DNA of 64,000 bases from positions 62,001 to 126,000 of the IMG/VR virus record IMGVR_UViG_3300005965_000002; one strand, 5' to 3'. Each line of letters opens with the position of its first letter. The first letter of the stretch is position 1. A model generated the notes under the pieces. That model worked only from the letters and a program-made list of their open reading frames with translations, was not told the DNA's origin and made no database searches. The position numbers and the translations under genes are program-made. Below, in pieces: positions 2,988 through 38,317 of this stretch.

Positions 2988-4587
2988 TTTTACCAACGCA
3001 GTGAATGTTCAAGATATGATTAGGATTCTTTCTTTTTCTTTTTATATCTCTGGTAATTACTGTCATCAGATTTTGCTCATACTGAGTATCTTCACACATG
3101 CTTTTTGCCGGGTTATTAGATATCTTGGCGACTGGCTGCAGTTCCTCATAATTTCTGCCACACTCTACCATTTTAATTACAAGCTGTAAGGCTTTTGGTC
3201 CGATGTCGTTTGTAAGGTTAGTCCCAACACCGAAAGCTACGCGAATGCGCCCGCTGAAGTACTTAGCTAGACGAATAACGGTGGGTATATCTAACCCATC
3301 ACTGAAAACTAAGGTTTTCGTCCGGGGATCTATACCAAGATGCTTATAGTGGTCAATTAGCCTGTCTCCCCAAAGAAATGGATTCCCACTATCATGTCGA
3401 GCACCATCAAAAAGTTTGGCAAAATATCTGTCAAAATCAGCGAGGAATTTTTCATCTCCGTAAGTATCAGAAAGAACTATCCCGAGGTCCCCTCGGTACT
3501 CTTTAGCCCAGCTATCCATAACAAACTGCTGCGCGTCAGAAAGCCGGGGACCCAAAGCTTGACCTGCCTGGAAGAGCTCATGAGCCATTGTCCCGATGGG
3601 CTTAAGGTCGTAAAACATAGAAAGCATGACGTTACTGGTACCAGACAATACACCAGCTTCTGCCATTGTACTAACTACTTCTTCATGCCACTCACCACTA
3701 AAGCATCTTCGGGTGCCGAAATCTGATATGATTAATTTCTGTCCTGTTTCGGACTCATATTTTTTAACCATCTGTATCTTAGCTTGGAGTCGTTCCCGGC
3801 CTTCATCTAAGTCGGTATTTTTGTGCAGTGCCCGTGTGTAGCATTCATGTACGATTTTAAGTATTTTTACTTCAAAAGGTATCGTATGAAGCCAGGGCCC
3901 CCGAATGACAATATCGAGTTTTCCGTTTTTCTCTTTTACAGTCACGTACTTTCTGCGTAGATAAAACATACGCAAGAAATCTACGTAATCAGGGGAAAGA
4001 AATTTACATTTCTGTTCAATAAAATTAAGTTCTTCTTCTGTATAAGACAAGTTACATATATGGTCAATCTGCTTTTCTATTTCTTTTTTAAAAGGAAGTA
4101 GATCTACTCCATCGGTACGGCATTTAAAACGCGCCTTCATAACTGCTCTCGAACAGTTATGAAGTATATATTGTTGCATGGAGAGCTTATAGAGATCGTC
4201 ATCTGTCATATATTGGATTACATAGGGATCCCCGTTTTCATCCTTCTTGGCAGAATCATTATATATCTTAGACATAAAAGTGCCTTGGCTGTCACTTTCC
4301 GAGACACAAGTCATGGAAATAAATTCAGCCTCAGGATTGGCTTTTTTGATTTCAGGCATGATTTCAGTTTCCGGATCGGAAACTGGATTTTCGGTTTTAA
4401 CAACGAATGTGTCGATTACCATGCCTTCATGCTTATCAAGTACTTCTTGTATGTGCTCGCTTACGTTTTCAATATCTTCAGACACATTATCTCTAAGCAA
4501 GCTTTTCAGCGAATTGACCAATATATTATGGTCTCTCGTTGCAAAGCCCGAACGGGGCCTGATCCAACAGTCTACTAAGTACCTCAC
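2971..4587 (-). CDS. pncB: Nicotinate phosphoribosyltransferase with ~115-aa unknown N-terminal extension
   Basis: DLYK, DFGTRR, GTSN, GTMAHE (phospho-His), DTY, RHDSG, FSDGL and FGVGTNL motifs. Confidence 0.93.
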   Translation of the reverse strand: MRYLVDCWIRPRSGFATRDHNILVNSLKSLLRDNVSEDIENVSEHIQEVLDKHEGMVIDTFVVKTENPVSDPETEIMPEIKKANPEAEFISMTCVSESDSQGTFMSKIYNDSAKKDENGDPYVIQYMTDDDLYKLSMQQYILHNCSRAVMKARFKCRTDGVDLLPFKKEIEKQIDHICNLSYTEEELNFIEQKCKFLSPDYVDFLRMFYLRRKYVTVKEKNGKLDIVIRGPWLHTIPFEVKILKIVHECYTRALHKNTDLDEGRERLQAKIQMVKKYESETGQKLIISDFGTRRCFSGEWHEEVVSTMAEAGVLSGTSNVMLSMFYDLKPIGTMAHELFQAGQALGPRLSDAQQFVMDSWAKEYRGDLGIVLSDTYGDEKFLADFDRYFAKLFDGARHDSGNPFLWGDRLIDHYKHLGIDPRTKTLVFSDGLDIPTVIRLAKYFSGRIRVAFGVGTNLTNDIGPKALQLVIKMVECGRNYEELQPVAKISNNPAKSMCEDTQYEQNLMTVITRDIKRKRKNPNHILNIHCVGKNEYLN

Positions 4588-21426: not shown

Positions 21427-22574
21427 TTTATATCTGCTCCACAAGCAGGGCACTTATCAAAGGCGCTTAGCTGATCTGTAATACCATTAATTTGTTTTTT
21501 AACTTCAGATAATTCTATTTCTATCTCTTTAGTCTCTCTCGCAGATTTAATCAGTTTTTCTTGTAAGCTTTTTAGATTTGTGATTTCATTTCCGAATTTA
21601 ATAGTAGGTATTTTTACTTTGCCAGATTTAGAGAGATTTTGTTCTTCAGTATAGAGCTTCTCATATCGTATCTGTAATGCCTTTAACTTTTCTATTTCCC
21701 TTTGCTCTATTTCGAGTTTTTCCCTATCAATTATACTAACTGACGAGATGCTTTCTAGTCTTTTAATCTCTTTAGCCAAACCCGTTAATTTAAGGTTAAG
21801 CTCTTTGAGGTTATTTATAGACTCCTGAAAATCGGTGATAGGGCTATAGTCATGAACCTCTACAGACTCAACTGCCTTTAATTTTTTGTATTCTTGGGCT
21901 AACTTTGAGTAAGAATCACGCAAGTCCTTAAATTTGATTATCTCGGACTCTGCTTGTTTGACCTGGTTCCTGAATCCTACTATCTGAGCTTTAGCTTTCA
22001 GGACCTCTTCAAATCCTTCAAACCTCGCAATTTCTCTTTGAGCGGATTCTAGGTCGGCTTGACGAGTTTTTAGGAGGGACCGGTTCTTTCTTATATCTTT
22101 GGCACACAGATCAGAAGATTTATATAATCTGTCTAACCCGTAGATAGATATAAGAAGATCGGCTGTTTTGGAGTCGCGCTTATCGACTAGAAACAACGGA
22201 AAGAACTGCTCGGAGTAATGAAGGTTTATTTTATCATTACCCGCAGCAATCAAACCAAGACCCGCTTCAGTAATAGCTGACGGAGGGGGCTCGTTGCCTA
22301 CTTTTTCTAGCCTTTTACCATTTACAACATAAAAATTGTTTCCATCTTCTTTATGCCAGGTAAGGTCTAGATTGTTAGCCCTAATTCTTACTTCAGCGTA
22401 CTTAGCTTCCCAATTAATGAAGCTAGTACCTTGCTCATTAGTAAGTGCAGCATTGATTGCCCTCAACACTGCACTTTTTCCCAGGTGGTTCCTACCTGTT
22501 ATTACCGTAAATCCATCAACTTTTATATGAGCGTGTTTAATTGATTCATAGTTCGTAATCTCTATCTCAATCAT
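21423..22574 (-). CDS. SbcC/Rad50 N-terminal half ending in a Zn hook
   Basis: ITNYES, Walker A GRNHLGKS, Q-loop SEQ, coiled coil, terminal CPAC. Confidence 0.85.
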   Translation of the reverse strand: MIEIEITNYESIKHAHIKVDGFTVITGRNHLGKSAVLRAINAALTNEQGTSFINWEAKYAEVRIRANNLDLTWHKEDGNNFYVVNGKRLEKVGNEPPPSAITEAGLGLIAAGNDKINLHYSEQFFPLFLVDKRDSKTADLLISIYGLDRLYKSSDLCAKDIRKNRSLLKTRQADLESAQREIARFEGFEEVLKAKAQIVGFRNQVKQAESEIIKFKDLRDSYSKLAQEYKKLKAVESVEVHDYSPITDFQESINNLKELNLKLTGLAKEIKRLESISSVSIIDREKLEIEQREIEKLKALQIRYEKLYTEEQNLSKSGKVKIPTIKFGNEITNLKSLQEKLIKSARETKEIEIELSEVKKQINGITDQLSAFDKCPACGADIK

Positions 22575-23853
22575 TTTTCTCGCCCATAAGACTTTCTAAC
22601 TCATCCAAATCTGCTTTCGCGTCTGGATCTATGTCTGAACCTTCGTTTAAGATATCATCAGAGAGCCCCAGGTTACTTCGGAGATCCTTCATAATATCTC
22701 TCTCATCATCGGTAAGGTTCTCAATGCCCTTTTCAAGAAGCTCATCATGCATAGTTTTCATTTCATCTATATTCTGAGTAGGCTTCAAGTAGGTCTGCAG
22801 AGCTTTGAGGATTTCAGGGTTATTTTCCAAATGTTCAAGTAGAGCTTCCTTACCCTGACAGTTAAAGCTGTACTCGCCGTTGGGATCTTCCCACGAAAAC
22901 CAAGCGCCTTTGAGTTTAATAACCTTTTTGTTTTTGCCGAGTTCAACAAGGGATAGGATATTGTTTATACCCTTTCCGAAGGTTATGTAGATAGGTCCGG
23001 TCTTAAAAGGAAGATCAAGTTTATTTTTAACAACAGTAGCCTTAACTACCTGGTTGACTATCTTCTCTTCCTTTGCCCCTGTAATGTTACTCGTTACAAG
23101 AGCTTTTTCTTTCTGCTTAGGCCTGAGCTCTATACGTACGTTCGAGAAGAATCGTACAGCGTTTCCACCAGAGGTAGTTTCATCCGGTCCTGAATCATAT
23201 TTACTCTTCTTGATCACCTTACGCTTCTGGTTAAGAAGCATCAAACAAGTATTAGAGTTTTCTAATCTTTTTGTGATCCAGTTAAGAAAATGACTCATCA
23301 ACCGGGCTTGTTTACCAATTGCTGATACTTCGTCGGCATCTCCCTCAGCACTGTCTCTAGGTATCATTGCTGTTACTGAGTCAATGATAATAAGCCAGGG
23401 TTTGATTTCCATGAGTGATTGACCAATCAACTTAGCACCTTGTTCAAATGACATCGGAGTCATATGAATAAAGGTTTCTTGGTCAATATTAATGCCGAGG
23501 TTTTCTATATACTTCTTTTGTGTACGTAGGGAGTGCTCAAAGTCGGCGAATAAAACAGTACCGCCAGCTTTTTGTACTTCTTTAGCTGCATGCAAGGCTA
23601 TAGTTGTTTTACCGCAAGCCTCATCACCAAAAATCTCAACAGTATACCCACGAGGAAATCCACCGGGTTGGTCTTGGAGAGTACCGTCTCCTATGAGACG
23701 GTTTAAAACCCATGAACCAGATGGGATAATATCGATAGCCTTATGTATATCACCTTCAATTTGTTCTTTTTTTAATCTTTCAAGAAAAGACTGAGCAGCG
23801 CTTTTTGTAGGCTTACTCGTTGTTTTTTTCGTGCTCTTTTTTGCCGGAGGCAT
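22567..23853 (-). CDS. recA: RecA recombinase
   Basis: GGFPRG..EIFGDEACGKTT, IIIDSV, QARLMS, NQ.R, TSGGNAVRF, VVKNK. Confidence 0.95.
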   Translation of the reverse strand: MPPAKKSTKKTTSKPTKSAAQSFLERLKKEQIEGDIHKAIDIIPSGSWVLNRLIGDGTLQDQPGGFPRGYTVEIFGDEACGKTTIALHAAKEVQKAGGTVLFADFEHSLRTQKKYIENLGINIDQETFIHMTPMSFEQGAKLIGQSLMEIKPWLIIIDSVTAMIPRDSAEGDADEVSAIGKQARLMSHFLNWITKRLENSNTCLMLLNQKRKVIKKSKYDSGPDETTSGGNAVRFFSNVRIELRPKQKEKALVTSNITGAKEEKIVNQVVKATVVKNKLDLPFKTGPIYITFGKGINNILSLVELGKNKKVIKLKGAWFSWEDPNGEYSFNCQGKEALLEHLENNPEILKALQTYLKPTQNIDEMKTMHDELLEKGIENLTDDERDIMKDLRSNLGLSDDILNEGSDIDPDAKADLDELESLMGEKND

Positions 23854-26820: not shown

Positions 26821-27219
26821 TTATTTTTTTAGATTGGTAATGTTCAGCCCGCTACCGCTGTATATTTTTGAGTGGTTATTTATGAAATCTACAGTTTCAG
26901 GGTCATCTAGATCTCCCCAGAAGCATAGATTGCGTAAAGGGCTCTGCACAATCATTTTTACCTCATCCATGTGGGGGAAATATGAGGAAAAGATAGTTAT
27001 TCCCCCCGGATCACCAAAAGTATACTCGGATCGGAAATACTCCTGTAGAGCTTCAAACATCGGAGACTCATCGTAACCGTGTATAATTTCATTACTTACG
27101 GTTAGGATGACGTGAGGCCGGTCTCCAGCGATAATAACTGCTTTAGATTCTCCTGATTCGCGTATTCTTCCGGATTCGTATACAAGTCTTGCAAAGTAAT
27201 TCCATCTCCGTTCATCCAT
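26821..27219 (-). CDS. Degenerate dCMP/cytidine deaminase-fold protein
   Basis: AVII..N..TIFSSYFPHMDEVKMIVQS matches the TLYxTxxPCxxCxKxIxQS pattern; HAE and PCxxC are absent. Confidence 0.55.
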   Translation of the reverse strand: MDERRWNYFARLVYESGRIRESGESKAVIIAGDRPHVILTVSNEIIHGYDESPMFEALQEYFRSEYTFGDPGGITIFSSYFPHMDEVKMIVQSPLRNLCFWGDLDDPETVDFINNHSKIYSGSGLNITNLKK

Positions 27220-30200
27220 CCTCTGATCCTTTCGTCGAACAGAGTGTTTCTTCTCTGTATCCGATCATTATTAATCGCTTGCTCTATAGCTGATCCTTGC
27301 CCTAAGACCACAACTTTTTTCTTGGCCCTTGTAATGGCGGTATACAAAAGATTTCTCTGAAGAATTCTCTGACCATGGGCGCGTACAATAGGCAGGATAA
27401 TCAAGGGATATTCTAAGCCCTGACTATTATGGGTTACATACCCATTCATCACATATGTATTATCGTGTTCTACCTCAATATCATACATATCTACTTCAGG
27501 TAATTTTTCTACTGATATTACTTTATCATAATTATAATCACTATTGTAATATGTGTTTTCAAACTTATAAAATAAGGAATTACCCTCATTGTGTCCTATT
27601 TGAGGATTTCTCAAAGCGCACAGGTAGTCGCCGTTTTTTATATTTCCCGCTTCTTTAAAGTAGATTCCAGAGGTATTGGCTACAAGGTGCCTATGCTCAA
27701 AACTAGAATCTACAAATGCTCCTGATTTAGTAGTAATTCTATAAACTTCCTTTTTCCCCACATGTACCTTGGATATTACCCTTTTTTTATTATTTTTACC
27801 TGTTAGCACTATATCACCTTTTTTTATGTCAGATAAAGGTATTATCCCTCGTTCAGTAAAGATTTTATTGTATCCAGGAGCGCATTTGTGTACACTTATT
27901 GCATAAGCTAATTTAAGCATATCATCCGCAAGCTTCATGGGGATTTCTACTCGTTTTGTTTTCCCATCAAACTCATCAATATCAATAACAATATTTCCTT
28001 CTACTATTAAAACGACCTTACCAATATCTCCATTAAATACATCTAGGTAGTAGTTGTTCTTTTTGATTAGTACCCGGTCGCCTTTTCGAATTATCATCCG
28101 GTTTAAAGAAACCTCTTTTTTGTTATCTGCTGGAGGGTTTAGCACACTCTGAAGCGCTACGTTAAGCGTTTCTACACTCAGAGGGCCATTATTCCTCGGG
28201 GTGATAATCTGGAAAAGCGTGGGTTCCTTTTTCTTTTTGTTTCCGTCCTTTATATGCTGAGCAAACCGTATGATTGTTTCTTCGATTGTTCCCATATTCT
28301 TTTCACGAAGGAACCATATATCAGCATGCTTATCTCTTTTAAATAGGGAAAGATCCGTATTGCCGTCTCTTATCCTTTTAGCGGCTTTGATGATGTCAGA
28401 CTGCTCTTCCTGCCGGAATATGGTTCTAAGCTGAATGACTTTAAAGCATGCGCAGCTAATTAAGTGCTTAAGTACGGTACCTGGGCCTACAGAAGGTAGC
28501 TGGTCATTATCCCCGACGAACACAATCTTTGTGTGGGAGAATAAGGCAGAAACCAGCCTGAAGAACACCTCCATATCAACCATGGAAGTCTCATCTACAA
28601 TGACTACCTTTGTATTGTACTTATTCAGAGCATGGTAGTCCCATTTATCTCCTTTATACCCTAGCTGTCTGTGTATCGTGCGTGCATCATAATTAGCCGT
28701 TTTAGCCAGCTTTTTAGCAGATATGCCGGTAGGTGTCAGTAGGTCAAAGCTTATATTCTTTCTCACCATGAGTTCTACAAGAGCTTTAACAATTGTTGTA
28801 TTGTGAGTTACTGTGAAATCTCCTAAAACAAATCGACCGTTTCCTGATATTTGAAACCCATAATATTTACCCTTTCCTATGCTTTTAATTTGTATCCCAG
28901 TAACTAGATTATCTTTAATTTGTTTTCTTTCCTCGGCTGTTTTTTTCTTAACCTTCGTTGGTATCTTACATAGACCATTACCAGAAATAGTAGCACGGTA
29001 ATAAGTGCCCTCTCCTGAATAGTATTTCCCTTTACTAAAGCATGAAAAGGATTTTTTGCATGGTTTAGGGTAAGCGCTGAATCCTAATGATCTAGCGATG
29101 AAAACTACATCGTTTAAAAGCTTTTCACTCTTAAATATTATGTCATAGCAGTTTCCTCTTTTATCATAAGATCCATCAGAATCGATTATACCAGCTAAAA
29201 GATTGAGTCTTATTTCTTCGCTGTTGGCCTTATATAAGTGGGGGACAGTTTTTGCTATTGTCAGCCCAGATTCTTGTAGATAATTCCAAAAAAAATTGGG
29301 CTTTCTTTTTCCCTTTAATTCTCCGTATGCTTTTGAATCCATATCACGGGATATGTGGTATTCAATATTATCTCCACTAACTTTTTTTATTGAAATTTCT
29401 GTCCCTCTTAGTATGGTATCGATAGCCTCAACTACTTCGGTAAACGGAGTACTTATTCTTGAGGCGTCTATAGCGCCGTTTCCTAACCACATACCGAGTA
29501 GGTATGGATGTATAGGTATATCTTTTGTTGGAAATTTAACAGGCACTCTGTACCCTTTTAGCCTTTCACGAAAGCTCTTGGCTAAAGAAAAATAAGTGTC
29601 TATGGATATATCGTGTATTTTTCCTTTACCTGACCCAGCATAGGTTGATTGCTTTAGAGAGAGAATATGAGACCTATTTACGACGTACTTATCTCCCTTT
29701 TTAGGAATAACTTCAAAAAGTTCTTCTTCCCCAGTCGCCGTGGAAAGAACTACCCTGGGGGTAGAGTCATCCCCCATCAGAACATCGTTTGTCTTTATAT
29801 CTTGAACTTCTTTAATTGTACCATCATACATTAGAACGGGTGTCCCGTAGCCTAAGCATTTACCTGTACCCGGGGAGCCTGTAATCACCATTACTTTTTC
29901 TTTTGTGAAAGATCTAATAGATTCTTTTTGATCCTCACTAAGATCCATGTGGTGGGCTTTTTCGTACTCGGATATAAATTCTTCTACGTTGAAATCCCCA
30001 AAATCGCACTCATCGTGCTTATCATAGATTTTCTTAAGTAGCCTGGCACTTTCATTTTCATAGAAAAACATGTTTATGTCGTAGTACCGGTTTTCGTCCT
30101 GGTAAATAAAGCCATCCTTTACCAGTCCTTCTATATGAGGCTCTATCTCAGAAAAAAGAACAACACCATTTTTGAATGGGTACTCAGAACTTTTATTGTA

Positions 30201-30920
30201 ATCATTGAATAGCTTGCTGATTTCAGCAGGCTGCAGGAACAGGTGTCCGGACTGCATACAGCTACGAAGCATAAAAAGGATAAAGTATCGGTATCTTAGC
30301 GGGTCCTGCGGAGATTTGCCTAGTTTGTGCGCCAGGTAATCGCAAGTGGTGAATCCGAATCCTTCAAAGCTTAAAAGATAGGGATTCTGCTTGATGACTA
30401 ATTCGGCATTGTAGCTATATTTCGATATGATTTTTTCTATTTTGAACTTAGAAAGCCCGAGGCTATGGAGGAATACTTTTACGGATTTTAACTCTTTATT
30501 TTCCTTCCACGCCTCAACAATATTTTCTACTATTTTTTCGCCTATACCCTCGATCTCAGTTAATCTTTCCGGGGTATTTTCAATGATATCTTCTATATCT
30601 TCTTTCTTAAAGTGCTCCGCTATGTCTCGGGCTCTTTCGGGTCCAATCCATTTTGCGATGGACTGTAAGTAGAGATAAATTCCCTGTAGTGAGTTATCGT
30701 GTGCGAAGGTATGGCTGAGAGCTTTGAATGTCATCCCGTATTTAGGGTGATTGAAGAAATCACCATGCACATCTACCATAGCGTTAGGTAGAAGATTTGG
30801 GAAAGAACCGGAAACCGAAATCCTAGCTCCGTCTTTCTGCGCAAGTATAAAAATTTTGAAGTCACCGTCTTGCGATTCAAATTTTATTTTGTTTACTTTT
30901 CCGGTGATAGTTTCCATCAT
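27102..30920 (-). CDS. recD2: RecD2-like SF1B helicase with two inteins
   Basis: HhH repeats, GSPGTGK|T, PTG.SA, TIHR, DETSM, VGD.DQLPSV, RQ, NGDIG, HK|SQG.EY, LLYTAITRAK. Confidence 0.93.
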   Translation of the reverse strand: MMETITGKVNKIKFESQDGDFKIFILAQKDGARISVSGSFPNLLPNAMVDVHGDFFNHPKYGMTFKALSHTFAHDNSLQGIYLYLQSIAKWIGPERARDIAEHFKKEDIEDIIENTPERLTEIEGIGEKIVENIVEAWKENKELKSVKVFLHSLGLSKFKIEKIISKYSYNAELVIKQNPYLLSFEGFGFTTCDYLAHKLGKSPQDPLRYRYFILFMLRSCMQSGHLFLQPAEISKLFNDYNKSSEYPFKNGVVLFSEIEPHIEGLVKDGFIYQDENRYYDINMFFYENESARLLKKIYDKHDECDFGDFNVEEFISEYEKAHHMDLSEDQKESIRSFTKEKVMVITGSPGTGKCLGYGTPVLMYDGTIKEVQDIKTNDVLMGDDSTPRVVLSTATGEEELFEVIPKKGDKYVVNRSHILSLKQSTYAGSGKGKIHDISIDTYFSLAKSFRERLKGYRVPVKFPTKDIPIHPYLLGMWLGNGAIDASRISTPFTEVVEAIDTILRGTEISIKKVSGDNIEYHISRDMDSKAYGELKGKRKPNFFWNYLQESGLTIAKTVPHLYKANSEEIRLNLLAGIIDSDGSYDKRGNCYDIIFKSEKLLNDVVFIARSLGFSAYPKPCKKSFSCFSKGKYYSGEGTYYRATISGNGLCKIPTKVKKKTAEERKQIKDNLVTGIQIKSIGKGKYYGFQISGNGRFVLGDFTVTHNTTIVKALVELMVRKNISFDLLTPTGISAKKLAKTANYDARTIHRQLGYKGDKWDYHALNKYNTKVVIVDETSMVDMEVFFRLVSALFSHTKIVFVGDNDQLPSVGPGTVLKHLISCACFKVIQLRTIFRQEEQSDIIKAAKRIRDGNTDLSLFKRDKHADIWFLREKNMGTIEETIIRFAQHIKDGNKKKKEPTLFQIITPRNNGPLSVETLNVALQSVLNPPADNKKEVSLNRMIIRKGDRVLIKKNNYYLDVFNGDIGKVVLIVEGNIVIDIDEFDGKTKRVEIPMKLADDMLKLAYAISVHKCAPGYNKIFTERGIIPLSDIKKGDIVLTGKNNKKRVISKVHVGKKEVYRITTKSGAFVDSSFEHRHLVANTSGIYFKEAGNIKNGDYLCALRNPQIGHNEGNSLFYKFENTYYNSDYNYDKVISVEKLPEVDMYDIEVEHDNTYVMNGYVTHNSQGLEYPLIILPIVRAHGQRILQRNLLYTAITRAKKKVVVLGQGSAIEQAINNDRIQRRNTLFDERIRGWMNGDGITLQDLYTNPEEYANQENLKQLLSLETGLTSS
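27426..27884 (-). mobile_element. Mini-intein (153 aa) in RecD2 motif V
   Basis: SVHK|CAPGYNKIFT...YVTHN|SQGLEY; no endonuclease. Confidence 0.92.
28800..29858 (-). mobile_element. LAGLIDADG intein (353 aa) in RecD2 Walker A
   Basis: GTGK|CLGYGTPVLM...VTHN|TTIV; LLGMWLGNG and LLAGIIDSDG. Confidence 0.95.
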
Positions 30921-31265: not shown

Positions 31266-31916
31266 TTAGTTCTGAATGTATTTACGATCAACGCGCACGA
31301 TGATATATTCACCAGGCTTGTACGTGGAGAATTTCATACCCTCACTGAATGCTTTTGCTGCATTAATTTCGAGGATTTCTACCCTGTCGCCCTCCCGTGT
31401 GGCAAACTTCGACGCAAAGTCGTTAGCCATCTCTGGAGTGTCATACAATTTGATGTACTTTTTTGTATGACTGCGTAGGCCTGTCTCCCGCATCCGACCT
31501 GCCAGGTTTTCCAGAGTACCAAAGTAAAGTGTATCAGGGGGTTGGACATACCGAACGATTTTGTACTTGATCTGGTTCTCCCCGTTGATGAGGATCTTCT
31601 GGTCTCTATCCTTGAAAAAGAACTCCACTACATGATTGTCATTGATGTAGTCAAGGTAAGGATGGAGGAAGACAACCACTTCTCTCATAGCCGGGATTGG
31701 TACGAATGCTTCTTGGTTATAAGGAAGCGAGTAGGATCTTCCTTCATTATCAAAAATCTCCAAGGAACCCGCGCAATTTTCACCATCACATTTGTCAGCT
31801 ACGCTCTTCAAAATATCAATAGAGCATAAAAGAGCTGTTTTGAGATCAGCGCTGCTTTTGAAAAGAGTTGGGGGTGACTTCTTAAACGGCGGTTTTTTGT
31901 TGTGATGCGGTATCAT
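31266..31916 (-). CDS. Degenerate RNA 2'-phosphotransferase (Tpt1/KptA)-like protein
   Basis: PPDTLYFGT..GL..KKYIKLY..ILEINA..GMKF..GEYI..V..KYI follows the KptA C-lobe pattern; start MIPHH has a GGAGG RBS. Confidence 0.7.
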   Translation of the reverse strand: MIPHHNKKPPFKKSPPTLFKSSADLKTALLCSIDILKSVADKCDGENCAGSLEIFDNEGRSYSLPYNQEAFVPIPAMREVVVFLHPYLDYINDNHVVEFFFKDRDQKILINGENQIKYKIVRYVQPPDTLYFGTLENLAGRMRETGLRSHTKKYIKLYDTPEMANDFASKFATREGDRVEILEINAAKAFSEGMKFSTYKPGEYIIVRVDRKYIQN

Positions 31917-31941
31917 TAACTTATCCTCCTGTGGTAGTTTA

Positions 31942-32373
31942 TTAGGATTCCGCTTTATTATTAGTATCACTACTAATGTTGGTTTCTTCTTCTTCTATTT
32001 CTTCTTCTTTTAGGGCTTCAGAGATATCAGATTCGGATAAAAGGACTTCTCTTTTAAGCAAACCAAATATCGTGGTATTTAGAAAACTGTTAACTACTCG
32101 GGTCTCTGTAAGAAGGTGCTGAATCATCTGGTTGATAGGAGATTCCTGATCCTTTAAAATATTCCTTACATTAGCCTTATCCCCATTAGCTAAACCAGAT
32201 AAAACTGTAGAGATATGCTCCATTGCTCGTACATTGAAGGAAATTTTCTTCTGAATAAAACCTTTCAGGTCTCGATTAATACCTTCCATGGAAAATGTAT
32301 AAGCTACTTCTTCTAACCGGCTATTATTCATTTCTTGATACTCTTGGAATTTCTTTTTGAGATCATCATTCAT
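31942..32373 (-). CDS. Hypothetical protein
   Basis: First ORF of the leftward block. Confidence 0.55.
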   Translation of the reverse strand: MNDDLKKKFQEYQEMNNSRLEEVAYTFSMEGINRDLKGFIQKKISFNVRAMEHISTVLSGLANGDKANVRNILKDQESPINQMIQHLLTETRVVNSFLNTTIFGLLKREVLLSESDISEALKEEEIEEEETNISSDTNNKAES

Positions 32374-32797
32374 ATTTTTAATCCTTAGGTGCAGTGATCA
32401 ACACTATGAATATACTGGTTTGCTCATTCTTTTTAAAGCGAATAAATGACATTTTTTGAGAAAATAAGAATATTTACTATTTTATAAACTGTATACTCGT
32501 TATTAATTATGACTTTTACCTTACCTAATAATTTACCAGAACCCAATATACTTTTTTAAATCATTACCTTACATATACTTTTTTAAAATTCAAAAAATAA
32601 AACCTATATATTAGTAATTATATTAATAATTACTCTTCTATTGTGTTTCCTCGAAGAGGAAATACAGTAGTAGCTATAAGAAATAAAGCTTAAACAGATG
32701 GCGACAAAAAATTAGAAAAAAGTTAGTAATGAGTAGATCTTACTTTAATTATGAAAATTTGATAAGTATATTGGAATAGATGTAAAGAAATCCAGGA
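32374..32797. promoter_or_regulatory. AT-rich divergent intergenic region at the strand switch (promoters, possible origin)
   Basis: Genes diverge here. Two ATATACTTTTTTAAA repeats, inverted repeat 32613-32634, hairpin 32638-32670, TTTGATAAGTATATTG at 32758. Confidence 0.6.
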
Positions 32798-33483
32798 GTG
32801 AATATGGGTCCTATTATAGTTATATCTGCTGATAAACTATCTCAATCAATGTTTTGTTCTTATTTATCCCAGATTTCCCTTATAGGGAAGGAAGTGGTAG
32901 TTAGAGATATAAATCTACTCTACTCCCCTGATGTTCAAGAGCAGATGATTGATGAATTTCTTACTCAGTTAGATAAAAGCCAACTATTGGTTGTTAAGTA
33001 TAAGATCAAAATAAATACTGATATGGATAAATTTAAGCTGCCGCCTAAAATACAGGATGCAGCATCTTATATTGTATTATTCGACATGTACTCCACCCAC
33101 CCTGAAGTATTAAAGGATACTCAGCAGTTTCCTAAGATACTTGATCGCTGGGAGGATTATATAAAAGGGCTCTCTTAGAGAGCTAACCCTCGTTTGAGAG
33201 AAGGTGAGCAAGGAGATAAGCAGCGGGATCGAGGCAGATTGACCGTGGTGGCTCCTGAAAATGCAAACCGGGCGGCTTATGAGGATTTTTAAAGGTCTTT
33301 TTAGGAAAAGGCCCCCTGCCGAAAGGCTGAGGAATTCTGCCAATAACTTACAGCCCGTAAATGCACGCGAAGCTGAGTGAGGCCCTGCCAGAAAGAAGCT
33401 TATAAATATCAAGCACTTAGGCAGGAAATAATACCAACTAAAGCCAAAACAGTAGTAGCCATCAGAAACAAAGCTTAAACAGA
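32664..33483 (+). repeat. 35-bp imperfect direct repeat (32664-32698 and 33449-33483)
   Basis: ACAGTAGTAGCTATAAGAAATAAAGCTTAAACAGA vs ACAGTAGTAGCCATCAGAAACAAAGCTTAAACAGA; 3 mismatches. Confidence 0.9.
32798..33178 (+). CDS. Hypothetical protein
   Basis: AGGAG RBS and promoter-like motif upstream. Confidence 0.6.
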   Translation: MNMGPIIVISADKLSQSMFCSYLSQISLIGKEVVVRDINLLYSPDVQEQMIDEFLTQLDKSQLLVVKYKIKINTDMDKFKLPPKIQDAASYIVLFDMYSTHPEVLKDTQQFPKILDRWEDYIKGLS

Positions 33484-33520
33484 AGAAACTCTGTTTCGGC
33501 GGGGTGCGTTAATCCCCTCG
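33169..33520 (+). ncRNA. Candidate structured non-coding RNA
   Basis: GC-elevated intergenic segment with many stems, including GCC-GAAA-GGC; family not recognised. Confidence 0.35.
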
Positions 33521-33549: not shown

Positions 33550-34563
33550 ATGTATTTCAAAGCCATTAAAGGCCATGGGGAAAATATTGCCCTGTTTAAA
33601 AAATGGGTGGTAGAAAACTCATTTGAAGGTGTTTATCTTTTTACAGGACCTAAAGGGGTAGGGAAATTTACAACGGCTCGCCAGCTCTGTAAATACATCC
33701 TGTGTACCGGAGTAAAAGATGATACCTGTCGCTGTGGAAGCTGTAAAATTTTTCCAGGCACCCCTGATTATCTGGAGATTAGTAAGGGTGGAGGAGAAAC
33801 TATTAAAGTTGCTGACGCAGAAAGCATAGACAATTTTACTAGTCTTCTTCCTTATAAAAGTAGAAAAAGGGTTGTGTTGATTGATGATGCAGAGAATCTA
33901 AACGTAAAAGCGGCTAATCGTCTACTAAAGGTGTTAGAAGATATAAAGAGCCATATGATTGTCATTTTGGTTTCTAGTAACCCGCATCTAATTCTCCCAA
34001 CTATTAAATCACGCACAACAGAAATTCCTTTCAGTCGCTTATCTGTGGAGGAATCTTTAGAGGTATTGAAGGATAGGGGCATGTCCGTTGGAAAAATTAA
34101 AGATATGTCCAAGGCTATACCATATTTGAGGGAAAGCATGCCTCGGGCAGGTCTTAAGTACTATGAGTATTATAAGTATGTACCCTCCTTCCTGGAGCTA
34201 ATGGTTTCTTCCAGTGAAGACGAAGTCTTGAGTGCTATTAAGAGTATAGAAGAAAATGAAAACATTTCTTATTTTGCCGAAATGTTAGTTGAGTACCTAT
34301 CTGACATGCTAAGGATAATGTACGATGCCGAGAACAACATACATTTTGATGCAAAGTTTAAGGAAATAGAGAAATTGACATTTTCTTGGAACGACGATCT
34401 ATGTATAGCATTTGCTAACCGCCTGCGAAACGCAATATCTGATTATGATCGAGGAATAAATTTGAAGTTGTATAATAGAGTACGCACAGCAGTATCCTGG
34501 GTTTACATTCTTCTCCAGAATCATTTGGGTAGGAAACAAAGTAAAGCCAAGGTTGCTCCATAG
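33550..34563 (+). CDS. holB: Clamp loader delta-prime subunit
   Basis: GPKGVGK, C-rich Zn module, IDDAENLN..AANRLLK.LE, LPTIKSR. Confidence 0.88.
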   Translation: MYFKAIKGHGENIALFKKWVVENSFEGVYLFTGPKGVGKFTTARQLCKYILCTGVKDDTCRCGSCKIFPGTPDYLEISKGGGETIKVADAESIDNFTSLLPYKSRKRVVLIDDAENLNVKAANRLLKVLEDIKSHMIVILVSSNPHLILPTIKSRTTEIPFSRLSVEESLEVLKDRGMSVGKIKDMSKAIPYLRESMPRAGLKYYEYYKYVPSFLELMVSSSEDEVLSAIKSIEENENISYFAEMLVEYLSDMLRIMYDAENNIHFDAKFKEIEKLTFSWNDDLCIAFANRLRNAISDYDRGINLKLYNRVRTAVSWVYILLQNHLGRKQSKAKVAP

Positions 34564-34571
34564 AGGAAATA

Positions 34572-35480
34572 ATGCCTAATAAGTATTTGATTACTGCTAA
34601 AGATTCATATTTTGCTCGTGAAAAAATTTTTCAGATAGCTGAAAAACACGATATACCGGATCCAAAAATTTTTGTAGAGCACAAGGACTTCATAGAGGAA
34701 GCCTACCAGGGTGACCTTTTTAATGATAGTCAAAAAGCCCTGGCTTTAATACCTCTTACAACAGAATCCCTGCCCCACATACTTAGTCTTTGTAACCAGA
34801 CTACTTCTGATGTTCTAATTCTAGTAGATTACGGTGGTCTATCCAAGAATCGAAACTACACAAAGATCAAAGCTCTTTGTGAGATTGTCCCGGTTAAAAA
34901 GTTTAGTGATAAAGAATCGGTTTCCTGGACAGCGGCTACCCTTAAAAACCACGCCTTTTCTTATGAGCCGGGCGTACCCGAGTTAGTAGCTGCTTATAAA
35001 GGACCTGATGCTCAAGGTATAATGAATGAGATAAAAAAGTTGGATTTGTATTTAGACGATAAAAAAGTTACAAAAAAAGTTTGTAAAACAATCATTTCCC
35101 GTGTAGGAGAGGGTAAAATGTTTGATTTTACAGAGCACTTCTTTAGAAAGCACAAAAAGGAAGTTATTGAGGAGTTTAATTCATTTTCAGAATCTTCATA
35201 TATAGGTTTGGTGCATCTACTGATTTCTCAGTGTGACCGGATATATAAGGTAGCTGTTTATAGAGAGCAAAAGATGTCAGCGGAAGAAATAGCAGAACTG
35301 ATAGGTATACCCCCTTTTATCATAAAGACTAAGATTTTTACAGCGCTGAATGTTTTTAATAAGGTAAAATTATTAAAGTTAATGGATATGTTTAATGAGC
35401 TAGATAAGCTCTTAAGATCATCTCCATATAATAAGAGATTGATGTTCGAGTCCTTTTTGCTGAAATCCTTTAACTTGTAA
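34572..35480 (+). CDS. holA: Clamp loader delta subunit
   Basis: NEIKKLDLY, FDF, GIPPFIIK, L.ELDKLLRS pattern of HolA. Confidence 0.78.
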   Translation: MPNKYLITAKDSYFAREKIFQIAEKHDIPDPKIFVEHKDFIEEAYQGDLFNDSQKALALIPLTTESLPHILSLCNQTTSDVLILVDYGGLSKNRNYTKIKALCEIVPVKKFSDKESVSWTAATLKNHAFSYEPGVPELVAAYKGPDAQGIMNEIKKLDLYLDDKKVTKKVCKTIISRVGEGKMFDFTEHFFRKHKKEVIEEFNSFSESSYIGLVHLLISQCDRIYKVAVYREQKMSAEEIAELIGIPPFIIKTKIFTALNVFNKVKLLKLMDMFNELDKLLRSSPYNKRLMFESFLLKSFNL

Positions 35481-37206: not shown

Positions 37207-37659
37207 ATGTATATATTAAGGTATATGGAAGATAAAGAACTTGACGGAAAACTGGTATACCTTACAATCCATTTTGAAAATTGGTTAAAACAGGTAAATC
37301 CTGCATTTAACGTCCCTATGGCTAATAGGTTAGCTAAGGTGATTAAAGTCTTCGATTGGGATACAGAAGAGGGTCAGATACTGCTAGCCGAGAGGGAAAA
37401 GACTGGTAAGTGGAAAAATCTAGATCCCAAAGACTTTAAATTTGTCCTTAAGGTATACTACCCCGAATTAGTCTTAAAAGGCAAAGTCAGAGGCTTCTCC
37501 GCCCAGGAGCTTGCTTGTAGGTATTACCCGGGCAAGGATATAACTATGTTTGAGCCGCTGCCAGATTCCCTAGTAAAAGAATTAGTGCGACAAGAAAAAA
37601 ACATACTGAAGGTAGAAAAAAGAAATGTATCTGGATCCGTTCGTAAGAAGAGCAAATGA
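37207..37659 (+). CDS. Hypothetical protein
   Basis: ORF in operon; start may be the downstream MEDKE. Confidence 0.55.
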   Translation: MYILRYMEDKELDGKLVYLTIHFENWLKQVNPAFNVPMANRLAKVIKVFDWDTEEGQILLAEREKTGKWKNLDPKDFKFVLKVYYPELVLKGKVRGFSAQELACRYYPGKDITMFEPLPDSLVKELVRQEKNILKVEKRNVSGSVRKKSK

Positions 37660-38317
37660 AGCTATTTTTCGATACGAGGAACCTTTAGAATATCTAAACG
37701 ACAGAGGAATAACAAAAGACGAAATAAGAAAATATTCTTTAGGTTACTTGAATATTGCCAATATAAAAGATGATGAAACCGAAGAATACAAAAGATTTAA
37801 AGAACAGACCTACAATTTTAGGGCCCTCGAAAAAAAGTTACTGATTCCCTTAAAAAATATTCTCGGTAAAGTGAATGGTGTCATTACCAGGGACTTGAAA
37901 GAAAAACGATACAAACAGTTTTTCTTGAAAGAAGCAAAGGATATAGGCACCTTTTTTGGATTGTATGAGGCTCTGCCGGAAATATGTAAGCAGAGGAAAG
38001 TCTTCGTTCACGAGGGAGCGATAGACGCGATTTCTTTTGCGAAAGTTTTTCCAAATAGTATTTCTGTACTAACTTCTCGAATTAACGAATGCCAATACGA
38101 GACATTGCGTTTTTTCGCTGATACGATTATCTTAGTTTTCGATGAGGATAGCCCGGGTAAGCACGGCGTAGATACAATGTATAAACTGTTTGGTAAGAAA
38201 CATCTTTATACAGTTTCGATTGGGTTTAACGATTCAAATGCATGCTTACAAAGAATGGGGCTCGAATCTTTTAAAAGATATATGAGGAACAAAGTCCCTC
38301 TTTTATTAAGAAATTAA
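37625..38317 (+). CDS. DnaG-type primase catalytic core (TOPRIM)
   Basis: YLNDRGIT, IPLKN..G, VHEGAIDAIS, FDEDSPG; no Zn-binding domain. Confidence 0.82.
   Translation: MYLDPFVRRANEAIFRYEEPLEYLNDRGITKDEIRKYSLGYLNIANIKDDETEEYKRFKEQTYNFRALEKKLLIPLKNILGKVNGVITRDLKEKRYKQFFLKEAKDIGTFFGLYEALPEICKQRKVFVHEGAIDAISFAKVFPNSISVLTSRINECQYETLRFFADTIILVFDEDSPGKHGVDTMYKLFGKKHLYTVSIGFNDSNACLQRMGLESFKRYMRNKVPLLLRN

Follow-up and report, generated by a model that had tools for sequence, protein, structure and literature searches.

What do two almost identical stretches of some 35 nucleotides, less than 1 kb apart in a huge phage genome, encode or specify, when the few differences between them are all silent in one reading frame? 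The original prediction described such a pair in the DNA analysed here (64,000 nucleotides of the IMG/VR record IMGVR_UViG_3300005965_000002, hereafter the window), noted that the three differences are synonymous for a frame that ends in TAA and terminates two short GTG-started ORFs, and proposed either a conserved micropeptide or tag-like frame, or a protein-binding site in which the synonymous pattern is due to chance. We first re-examined the sequence itself and found that the observation holds. A repeat search recovered a 38-nt direct repeat (32661-32698 and 33446-33483, 34/38 identical, spacing 785), and the 30-mer pattern with the three degenerate sites matched exactly twice in the window (0 expected in 100 shuffles) and exactly twice in the whole record of 258,580 bases. 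The three differences are third positions and synonymous in the frame ending in TAA; a fourth difference, one codon upstream (32663 versus 33448), is also a third position but is non-synonymous (N/K). Both GTG-started ORFs exist (32643-32693 and 33377-33478), neither is preceded by a Shine-Dalgarno-like sequence, and both copies follow a hairpin, the first directly (32646-32662), the second at a distance of 20 nt (33384-33425). The locus consists of the following elements:

32546-32587, plus strand: two copies of a 15-nt AT-rich motif with a -10-like hexamer (32546-32560 and 32573-32587), a possible promoter of the rightward transcript.
32614-32633, no strand assigned: 20-bp perfect palindrome just upstream of the hairpin.
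32646-32662, plus strand: hairpin with a 7-bp stem and a 3-nt GAA loop closed by C-G, immediately 5' of copy 1.
32661-32698, plus strand: repeat copy 1 (copy A, tract X), purine-periodic and A-rich, in the 5' leader/origin region.
32804-33178, plus strand: ORF124, a small conserved protein of unknown function.
33179-33445, plus strand: body of a structured non-coding RNA, including a 5' domain (33212-33316), a tetraloop hairpin (33294-33313) and a long terminal hairpin (33384-33425).
33446-33483, plus strand: repeat copy 2 (copy B, tract X'), the 3' tail of the structured RNA.
33477-33517, plus strand: two hairpins after copy 2 (33477-33496, overlapping the TAA and the end of the repeat, and 33501-33517), terminator-like in relatives.
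33550-35480, plus strand: downstream genes for a clamp-loader delta'-like (33550-34563) and a delta-like (34572-35480) protein (Pfam DNA_pol3_delta2 at 2e-34 and DNA_pol3_delta_C at 2e-14), given as context only.

We then asked whether this arrangement is found in other phages. Peptide and DNA pattern scans of viral contigs, a blastn search of a phage collection and a scan of genome contigs for ORF124 recovered nothing, and a pattern scan of metagenomes returned only the window's own record; the communities that contain this phage are hypersaline-lake or mat communities. Nevertheless, the same layout was found in nine lineages of related huge phages (a clade of ~0.47-Mb phages; individual lineages are denoted by L numbers), with ORF124 identity down to ~30-35% and a genome GC content ranging from 35% to 62%: copy A follows a perfect hairpin with a 3-nt loop in the divergent intergenic region, and is followed by an ORF of ~125 aa, a structured RNA of 260-360 nt, copy B and terminator-like hairpins. 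The sequence of the repeat differs between lineages but matches within each genome (92-100% identity), and exactly two copies per record were found in the window's record (G000) and in the records of two relatives (G001 and G002). A six-frame search of the genome for other peptide-like copies returned only the two known ones.

The individual elements are supported to a different extent. Of the AT-rich motif, the second copy is conserved in L003, the 14-mer core occurs only four times in 258 kb and a sigma-70-like hit lies at 32583-32612, but its function is inferred. The palindrome is conserved in L003 with one change. For the hairpin preceding copy 1, an alignment of six lineages showed 100% of cells paired, compensatory changes in 6 of 7 pairs and an invariant C-G.A-G loop and closing pair, and L012 and L095 also have a perfect hairpin with a 3-nt loop. 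ORF124, which always lies between the two repeat copies, gave no Pfam, PHROG or NCBIfam hit and, as a profile against PDB sequences, only a chance-level hit, although 106 cluster representatives of 120-130 aa were recovered. Its predicted structure (AF2, pLDDT 93) is a compact alpha/beta fold with a RecA/AAA-like core lacking a Walker A motif; VIA structure comparison gave best Z-scores of 7-8 to RecA-superfamily and P-loop cores, whereas a Foldseek search of the PDB found nothing at E<1e-3. A complex prediction for ORF124 with the 33-aa product of the copy-2 ORF gave no answer (score 0.00) and is no evidence either way. With respect to the hairpins after copy 2, the stems are conserved and the loops vary in L003 and L005, strain SNPs at 33507, 33509 and 33510 fall in the loop, and relatives have UUCG-loop hairpins or a hairpin plus a U-run at this place.

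The RNA body stands out by its GC content (52% in a 39% GC genome) and is 83-88% identical to that of L003, against 70% for ORF124. A covariance model of its 5' domain contained 25 pairs, with 96% of cells paired against 41-53% when slid, 7 pairs with double changes and several invariant G-U pairs that fit only the plus strand; the hairpin at 33294-33313 has 6 of 8 covarying pairs in 7 lineages. This model reaches L008 only weakly (E 0.01) and does not reach L095, L097, L098 or L012, and an automatic MAFFT/RNAalifold alignment of all ten RNA bodies was too poor to use, so that the homology of those RNA bodies rests on synteny and on shared blocks seen by eye. No Rfam 15 family matched: there were no hits at the gathering threshold in the 64-kb window, and only sub-threshold, chance-level hits (E<=10) in the locus and in six relatives. 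ARAGORN found no tRNA or tmRNA in the window and no tmRNA in the genome, and Rfam gave no tmRNA hit even at E<=10 in the locus or in six relatives.

The repeat tracts share a pronounced periodicity. They are 56-80% purine, with a purine at every third base in 126 of 142 cases (89%; 0/5000 shuffles), and 11 of the 14 differences between copies, taken over five lineages, fall in the same phase, the third position of the putative codons. The phase pattern thus exceeds chance once relatives are included and it recurs in independent lineages (4/4 differences in L095 and 2/2 in L008 in the homologous phase). The tracts are predicted to be less paired than the RNA body in 9 of 9 lineages. Between orthologs they hardly change at all: in the comparison with L003, copy 1 is identical over its core (35/35) and copy 2 over its full length (38/38), while the 4-fold sites of the flanking genes are only 24-48% identical, the spacer is 53% identical and ~50% of third positions should have differed. 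Copy 2 shows one third-phase change in L005, and no SNPs were found in either copy among strain variants.

The interpretation offered in the original prediction is therefore only partly supported: the pattern is not a matter of chance, but conventional translation is contradicted. The GTG of copy 1 is replaced by GGA in L003, the copy-A frames of L095, L008, L011, L094 and L098 contain no ATG, GTG or TTG, and no Shine-Dalgarno sequence is present before any copy. A TAG directly precedes the frame of copy A in L003 and a TGA that of copy B in L097. The repeat continues 5-55 nt beyond the in-frame stop in five lineages, and the encoded peptides range from acidic to T/V-rich to basic. Synonymy adds nothing beyond phase (8/10 synonymous changes between copies, against about 7/10 expected for random third-position changes). 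Of the changes named beforehand as arguing against a reading frame, non-synonymous differences (N/K twice, I/L once) and a 1-nt indel between the L007 copies were indeed encountered, although the indel lies after the in-frame stop.

The position of the locus in the genome suggests another role. The global minimum of the cumulative GC skew of the record lies at window position 32652, inside the hairpin next to copy 1; in the 62%-GC relative G002 it lies at 131801, 12 nt from copy A, and in G001 it is 1.2 kb away. Genes for replication and recombination flank the site on both sides (RecD2, RecA at 22567-23853, RuvC, SbcCD-like, beta clamp, clamp loader, DnaG-like primase at 37625-38317 and a 5'-3' exonuclease). 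The coincidence is weaker than it looks, since the minimum must fall somewhere in the divergent intergenic region anyway, the purine-rich tract helps to place it there, and the divergent gene orientation means that transcription could produce the same signal. No DnaA box with at most one mismatch lies adjacent to copy A in any of 10 loci.

The explanation that we tentatively prefer, at less than even confidence, is that the repeat represents a pair of co-evolving, mostly single-stranded nucleic-acid tracts within a conserved module at the predicted bidirectional replication origin of these phages. In this view, rightward transcription from the AT-rich divergent region would produce RNA carrying the purine-rich tracts, and each tract, next to a structure that stops re-annealing (the hairpin for X, the folded RNA body for X'), would form or nucleate an RNA-DNA hybrid or a nucleoprotein filament that opens or primes the origin, as in ColE1 RNA II or the T4 R-loop origins. 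The hairpin plus tail may also act as a single-strand initiation signal of the G4/RSF1010 ssiA type. The tract would be read in a 3-nt register by a lineage-specific partner, for which the phage RecA and ORF124 are candidates encoded nearby, and this would explain why the two copies must match and change together between lineages. The analysis itself establishes the architecture, the co-variation, the periodicity, the constraint at the nucleotide level, the structure of the RNA on the plus strand and the position at the skew minimum among replication genes; transcription (no RNA run was found to contain the locus), the formation and processing of a hybrid or filament, priming, origin function and the identity of the reader are inferred, the link to ORF124 or RecA purely so. 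Several points argue against this view: no RNase HI was found in the 258 kb, a trans-acting primer would need its 3' hairpins removed, and R-loop or ssi models by themselves explain neither the periodicity nor why differences between copies sit in one phase while those same positions are frozen between orthologs.

Comparison with described systems shows partial similarities in each case. With the R-loop or primer-RNA origins (ColE1 RNA II; phage T4 ori(uvsY) and ori(34)) the locus would share a promoter-driven transcript whose folded upstream part is followed by a tract that could hybridise to the template, as well as AT-rich surroundings, a position at the start of leading-strand asymmetry and a nearby gene for a 5'-3' exonuclease of the T4 RNase H/FEN family; it differs in having two co-varying tracts 0.8 kb apart, a strict 3-nt purine periodicity and a protein gene in between. 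The C-GNA-G mini-hairpin form is reported in a review for the priming origins of phages G4, St-1 and alpha3, for RSF1010 ssiA and for N4 early promoters (PMC13037366), and the locus has such a stable hairpin followed by a predicted single-stranded tail at a putative replication start region. RSF1010 also has two related signals, but ssiA and ssiB lie on opposite strands whereas these copies are direct repeats, copy 2 has no such hairpin in front, and those signals have no periodic tract. The DnaA-trios of bacterial oriC (basal unwinding system) likewise form a repeating trinucleotide element on one strand beside an origin, bound as single-stranded DNA by an ATPase filament that takes 3 nt per protomer (PMC8287927), and the window tract starts with two TAG trios; however, adjacent DnaA boxes are lacking, the conserved base is a purine in one phase rather than a central adenine, the tracts are much longer and a second copy lies inside an RNA. 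Iteron-type origins or copy-control repeats, with three or more ~20-bp direct repeats in tandem bound by a Rep protein, do not fit, as there are only two copies, 785-1118 nt apart, with no Rep-like gene between them. Retroviral polypurine tracts (3' and central PPT) are two identical purine-rich RNA tracts in the same orientation that are used as primers, but this is a DNA phage and no reverse transcriptase (RVT_1) was found in the 258 kb, which, together with differences that are not adenine-specific, also speaks against diversity-generating or retro-element repeats.

Among the alternatives, a role of both tracts as RNA-level regulatory sites on one early transcript is possible but less likely. 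X in the 5' leader and X' just before the terminator-like hairpins would then bind the same lineage-specific factor, either a nut-like processive antitermination or readthrough system that lets RNA polymerase pass the hairpins into the clamp-loader genes, or a repressor of ORF124 that is titrated by the abundant RNA tail as a decoy. The two sites co-vary within a genome and differ between lineages, as lambda nutL and nutR co-vary with N, each tract is paired with a hairpin and predicted to be accessible, X lies 50-390 nt before ORF124, X' always lies directly upstream of terminator-like hairpins and 60-230 nt before the next gene, and the small ORF124 is always in between. As in the lambdoid phages there would be exactly two RNA sites per genome, one before a small early gene and one before a terminator upstream of replication genes. 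On the other hand, both sites are on the same strand and probably in the same transcript, so that one nut-like site would suffice, copy B lacks the hairpin that is attached to copy A, ORF124 does not resemble N (it is a predicted compact alpha/beta domain and not an arginine-rich peptide), tracts of 38-66 nt conserved to the base are long for a protein site, and neither the periodicity nor the position at the skew switch is explained. Decoding of both tracts by ribosomes without a normal start (tag-like, tmRNA-like or IRES-like entry, or leader-peptide sensing) appears unlikely. In its favour, second-phase bases vary across sites yet match between copies while third-phase bases are compositionally biased yet differ, as expected of codons; an in-frame TAA ends the tract in the window, L097, L011 and L007, and a TGA in L094; several copy-B frames start with ATG (L007, L011, L094, L008 and L098); and in the window the stop sits in the 5' arm of a hairpin, preceded by a folded RNA and an A-rich linker, as in the tmRNA message domain. 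A start-less frame ending in a stop inside a hairpin is present in the window, L003 and L097 but absent in L012, where the frame stays open for more than 40 codons. Yet no tRNA-like domain, acceptor end or pseudoknot set was detected (ARAGORN and Rfam were negative on the window, the genome and the relatives), there is a second copy without any RNA body, and the peptide ends are not degron-like. Moreover, the ATG is replaced by ATC or ATA in L095 and L010 and lies inside a conserved palindromic hairpin, the purine periodicity (89%) far exceeds that of the real genes of this phage (66%; only 4% of 13-codon windows reach 12/13), and the minus-strand frame is equally coding-like and equally lacks starts.

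An old duplication without a function of its own, kept similar by occasional gene conversion in recombination-proficient phages (this phage encodes RecA, RuvC and SbcCD-like proteins), is very unlikely: both copies are frozen between the window and L003 while the flanking non-coding DNA is 53-64% identical, each copy keeps its own variant bases (so there has been no recent conversion), the periodicity and the attached hairpins are conserved in all lineages, and no deletion joints between the copies appeared in contigs of four metagenomes, although contigs are insensitive for this. Other readings were likewise not supported. Stop-codon recoding, considered because of a CUA-anticodon tRNA, found no support in ORF statistics (no other genetic code was used in any of the readings). 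Readthrough or an intron joining ORF124 to copy 2 is at odds with three different stop codons that intervene in the window, indels in L003 that break the frame and the absence of a group I intron signal in Rfam, and ribosomal bypass from the hairpin-enclosed ORF124 stop lacks a matching landing codon before copy 2. A small hydrophobic ORF on the minus strand (type I toxin-like) has no conserved start, and no complementary partner of the tract was found in the locus beyond shuffled controls in 7 lineages, with k-mer matches in the 258 kb at the shuffled level; ~45% of the genome is missing from these 258 kb. A more speculative and unlikely possibility is that the structured RNA is a trans-acting guide: its tail X' is sense-identical to X and could pair with the bottom strand at the origin, loaded in 3-nt register by the phage RecA or the predicted RecA/AAA-like ORF124, and the RNA would then mark, open or prime the origin. 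This would be RNA-guided origin recognition in a virus of bacteria and would account for guide and target having to co-vary, but mismatch tolerance at one position of each triplet would be an added assumption.

For annotation the case is a warning, as differences that look synonymous can occur in non-genes. Replication origins of huge phages are known only from skew plots, and here a concrete and conserved set of parts sits at the skew switch in phages of very different base composition: a stable hairpin, a periodic tract, a small protein of unknown function and a ~300-nt RNA family absent from Rfam that ends in a second copy of the tract. The rule that the two tracts of a genome match and change together points to a specific recognition event, and the 3-nt periodicity, unusual for a sequence that is evidently not an ordinary gene, implies a reader with a triplet step, either a ribosome or a RecA/DnaA-like filament.

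The window covers bases 62001-126000 of a 258,580-base IMG/VR virus record (G000; 38.6% GC) with a CheckV completeness of 55%. Two related records of 183 kb and 86 kb are rated 39% and 18% complete, and the phages are therefore about 0.47 Mb in size. The sequencing runs that hold the locus are DNA runs from hypersaline-lake and microbial-mat metagenomes in five studies; none is an RNA run. Outside the window, positions 2056-59314 of the record carry an array of 37 tRNA genes, all on the minus strand (e.g. c[30968,31041]) and including one with a CUA anticodon (amber-suppressor type), and the 5-kb composition table shows local GC peaks at 145001-150000 and 120001-125000 (49% and 44%, against 39% overall).

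The repeat described in the original prediction is real. Its two copies are 34/38 identical and lie 785 nt apart, and the 30-mer pattern given in the prediction matches twice in the window, with no match expected by chance, and twice in the whole record. The three differences that had been named are indeed synonymous third positions, whereas a fourth difference, one codon upstream, is also a third position but changes N to K. The two GTG-started frames exist as described and lack a ribosome-binding site. The elements found at and around the repeat were:

32546-32587, a 15-mer that occurs twice, upstream of the hairpin that abuts copy 1
32614-32633, a 20-bp perfect palindrome, also upstream of that hairpin
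32646-32662, a 7-bp hairpin with a 3-nt loop that abuts copy 1
32661-32698, repeat copy 1 (copy A; tract X)
32804-33178, plus strand, ORF124
33166-33183, a hairpin with the stop codon of ORF124 in or next to its loop
33294-33313, a tetraloop hairpin
33384-33425, a long hairpin that is followed by copy 2
33446-33483, repeat copy 2 (copy B; tract X')
33477-33496 and 33501-33517, two downstream hairpins, the first of which is overlapped by copy 2

The 14-nt core of the 15-mer occurs only four times in 258 kb, and both the 15-mer and the palindrome are conserved in the related locus L003; they may be an operator and a promoter of the rightward early transcript. The stem of the hairpin at the stop codon of ORF124 is kept by compensatory changes in L003 (2776-2797) and in the related locus L007 (2884-2903) but is absent in the loci L008 and L011, and it could represent the 5' end of the RNA described below or a processing site.

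Copy 1 lies in a divergent intergenic region of 21-25% GC. To the left, on the minus strand, we found a 143-aa ORF, a Tpt1-like RNA 2'-phosphotransferase, an intein-containing RecD2 helicase, RecA, RuvC, an SbcCD-like pair, a Cas4-like nuclease and a beta clamp. To the right, on the plus strand, we found ORF124, a 370-nt gene-free stretch of up to 52% GC, clamp-loader delta' and delta genes, a DnaG-like primase, a tau/gamma-like clamp-loader subunit, a 5'-3' exonuclease and a sigma-70 region-4 protein. The RecD2-like helicase (27102-30920, minus strand) is 1272 aa long, against 767-838 aa in relatives, and carries two intein-type insertions: a Hint plus LAGLIDADG homing endonuclease at about aa 355-621 and an intein splicing domain at about aa 1044-1165. 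The Tpt1/KptA-like RNA 2'-phosphotransferase (31266-31970, minus strand) is conserved next to the locus in several relatives (L003, L095, L096) and lies only one gene, the 143-aa ORF, from a new structured RNA. The cumulative GC skew of the whole record has its global minimum at window position 32652, inside the hairpin beside copy 1.

Searches with the clamp loader and with ORF124 recovered syntenic loci (numbered L003 to L100) from nine lineages, in which ORF124 identity to the window ranges from 64-67% down to about 30% and genome GC from 35% to 62%. Every lineage has a direct repeat at the same two places, as listed in the following.

Direct repeats bracketing the ORF124 homologue (lineage: repeat length; mismatches; spacing).
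Window / L003: 38 nt; 4; 785
L011: 66 nt; 2; 805
L012: 38 nt; 2; 837
L091 / L095 / L096: 53 nt; 4; 839
L094: 63 nt; 0; 867
L097: 62 nt (first 54 identical); no count; 794
L098-L100: 41 nt; 0; 855
L007: 27 + 51 nt, separated by a 1-nt indel; no count; ~800
L008 / L009: 45 nt; 2; 1118

Copy A always lies in the divergent intergenic region upstream of the ORF124 homologue, and copy B always at the end of a 260-360-nt gene-free stretch after that ORF, just before terminator-like hairpins, some of which have UUCG loops or U-runs. The repeat sequence differs from lineage to lineage, and the related records G001 and G002 again hold exactly two copies; the copies of one genome therefore co-vary. The lineage of L008 (3340-4000) and L009 has in addition a 660-nt intergenic region with a hexamer tandem array (3454-3509), a 41-nt repeat spaced 87 nt apart (3810 and 3897) and a weak minus-strand hit of the RNA model described below (3799-3898, E 0.03).

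The window and L003 are saturated at synonymous sites: their 4-fold sites are 48% identical in ORF124 and 24% identical in the clamp loader, and the spacer after copy 1 is 53% identical. Even so, copy 2 is 38/38 identical and the core of copy 1 is 35/35 identical, and each copy keeps its own variant bases. Strain variants in other metagenomes carry SNPs in hairpin loops and spacers but none in either repeat or in the RNA core, and no deletion joint between the copies was seen in contigs from four metagenomes. Selection therefore acts on the nucleotides themselves. In all nine lineages the tract has a purine at every third base (126/142 = 89%, against 51% and 64% in the other phases), which is not reached by any of 5000 shuffles, and G is almost confined to that phase. 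By comparison, real genes of this phage have 66% purine at codon position 1, and only 4% of 13-codon windows reach 12/13. Of the 14 differences between the two copies of a genome, 11 lie two bases after the purine, i.e. at the "third codon position", but being synonymous adds nothing beyond being in that phase (8 of 10 observed against about 7 expected).

We then considered whether the tracts are translated. The phase bias, the codon-like contrast between a second phase that is variable but matched and a third phase that is biased but differing, the in-frame stops at the end of several tracts and the ATG before copy B in five lineages all speak for translation. On the other hand, there is no start codon or ribosome-binding site for copy A in most lineages; in L003 the GTG is lost and TAG directly precedes the tract, which is nevertheless 100% conserved; TGA directly precedes copy B in L097; and the ATG of the L007 group lies in a conserved palindromic hairpin and is ATC or ATA in L095 and L010. 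Moreover, the repeat continues 5-55 nt beyond the stop in five lineages, the peptides are chemically unrelated (basic/hydrophobic, acidic, T/V-rich), there is zero synonymous change between orthologues, and the minus-strand frame is equally codon-like and equally start-less. No tRNA-like domain was found, no other copy of the peptide was recovered in six frames, and, despite the tRNA with a CUA anticodon, ORF statistics show no sign that TAG is read as sense in the 258 kb. A complex prediction of ORF124 with the product of the copy-2 ORF gave no answer. We consider decoding by ribosomes unlikely, and the interpretation given in the original prediction, either a conserved micropeptide or tag-like frame or a protein-binding site with a chance pattern, is supported only in part.

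The stretch between ORF124 and copy B is conserved better than the protein genes (83-88% identity with L003). A covariance model of its 5' domain, built from four relatives, finds the window and L003 at E about 1e-7 and nothing else in the window. On the six-sequence alignment 96% of cells pair, against 41-53% for slid partners, seven pairs show double changes, and several invariant G-U pairs fit only the plus strand. The tetraloop hairpin (33294-33313) covaries at 6 of 8 pairs across seven lineages. No Rfam family matches, and copy B is predicted to be less paired than the RNA body in 9 of 9 lineages. A conserved helix strand of the 5' domain (33222-33250) resembles the start of the repeat tract (8 of 12 bases), with differences that again fall at every third base, although this may be chance.

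The hairpin before copy A is perfect in all eight lineages for which there was enough upstream sequence. It covaries at 6 of 7 pairs and keeps an invariant C-G closing pair with a G-N-A loop in six lineages, whereas the loop is TAC in L095 and CGC in L012. This is the "mini-hairpin" form that a recent review reports at the priming origins of phages G4, St-1 and alpha3, in RSF1010 ssiA and in N4 early promoters (PMC13037366). ORF124 belongs to a family of at least 106 clusters, all of 120-130 aa, with no Pfam, PHROG or NCBIfam match. Its AlphaFold2 model is confident (pLDDT 93), and whereas Foldseek finds nothing significant, VIA-align gives middling matches (Z 6-8) to RecA-superfamily and AAA+/P-loop cores, but the protein has no Walker A motif. 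With respect to a putative origin, the global skew minimum of the 62%-GC record G002 (131801) lies 12 nt from copy A (131757-131789), on its hairpin side, and in G001 it is 1.2 kb away. As gene orientation also flips here and the tract is itself purine-rich, the coincidence is suggestive and not proof.

The data establish a conserved module, composed of a hairpin plus tract X, then ORF124, then a structured RNA ending in tract X', then hairpins, that sits at the strand-asymmetry switch amid replication genes, and they also establish a requirement that X and X' match. What this module does is inferred, including transcription, hybrid or filament formation, priming and the nature of the reader. 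We tentatively favour an origin-associated role, in which transcripts carrying the purine-rich tracts, each next to a structure that prevents re-annealing, would form RNA-DNA hybrids or seed a filament that opens or primes the origin; the hairpin plus tail could double as a priming signal, and the reader would work with a 3-nt step. The main rival, which we consider somewhat less likely still, is a purely RNA-level pair of sites for one factor, acting in nut-like readthrough or as a decoy. Neither model explains by itself why third-phase bases are frozen in time and yet are the ones that differ between the copies. A more speculative and improbable possibility is that the RNA tail guides initiation machinery to the identical origin tract by pairing with its bottom strand. 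Searches for a complementary partner in the locus and in the 258 kb were negative, as were searches for DnaA boxes next to copy A and for reverse transcriptase and RNase HI in the 258 kb.

In function the module most resembles R-loop origins (ColE1 RNA II, T4 oriF/oriG), hairpin-type single-strand initiation signals and lambda nut pairs, while DnaA-trios are a precedent for a trinucleotide-periodic origin element that is read as single strand (PMC8287927). It is not assigned to any of these, since the defining features were in part not found and in part are of a kind that sequence alone does not show. We regard it as a new form of origin- or leader-associated cis element with a new RNA family attached, and if the guide model holds it would be categorically new.
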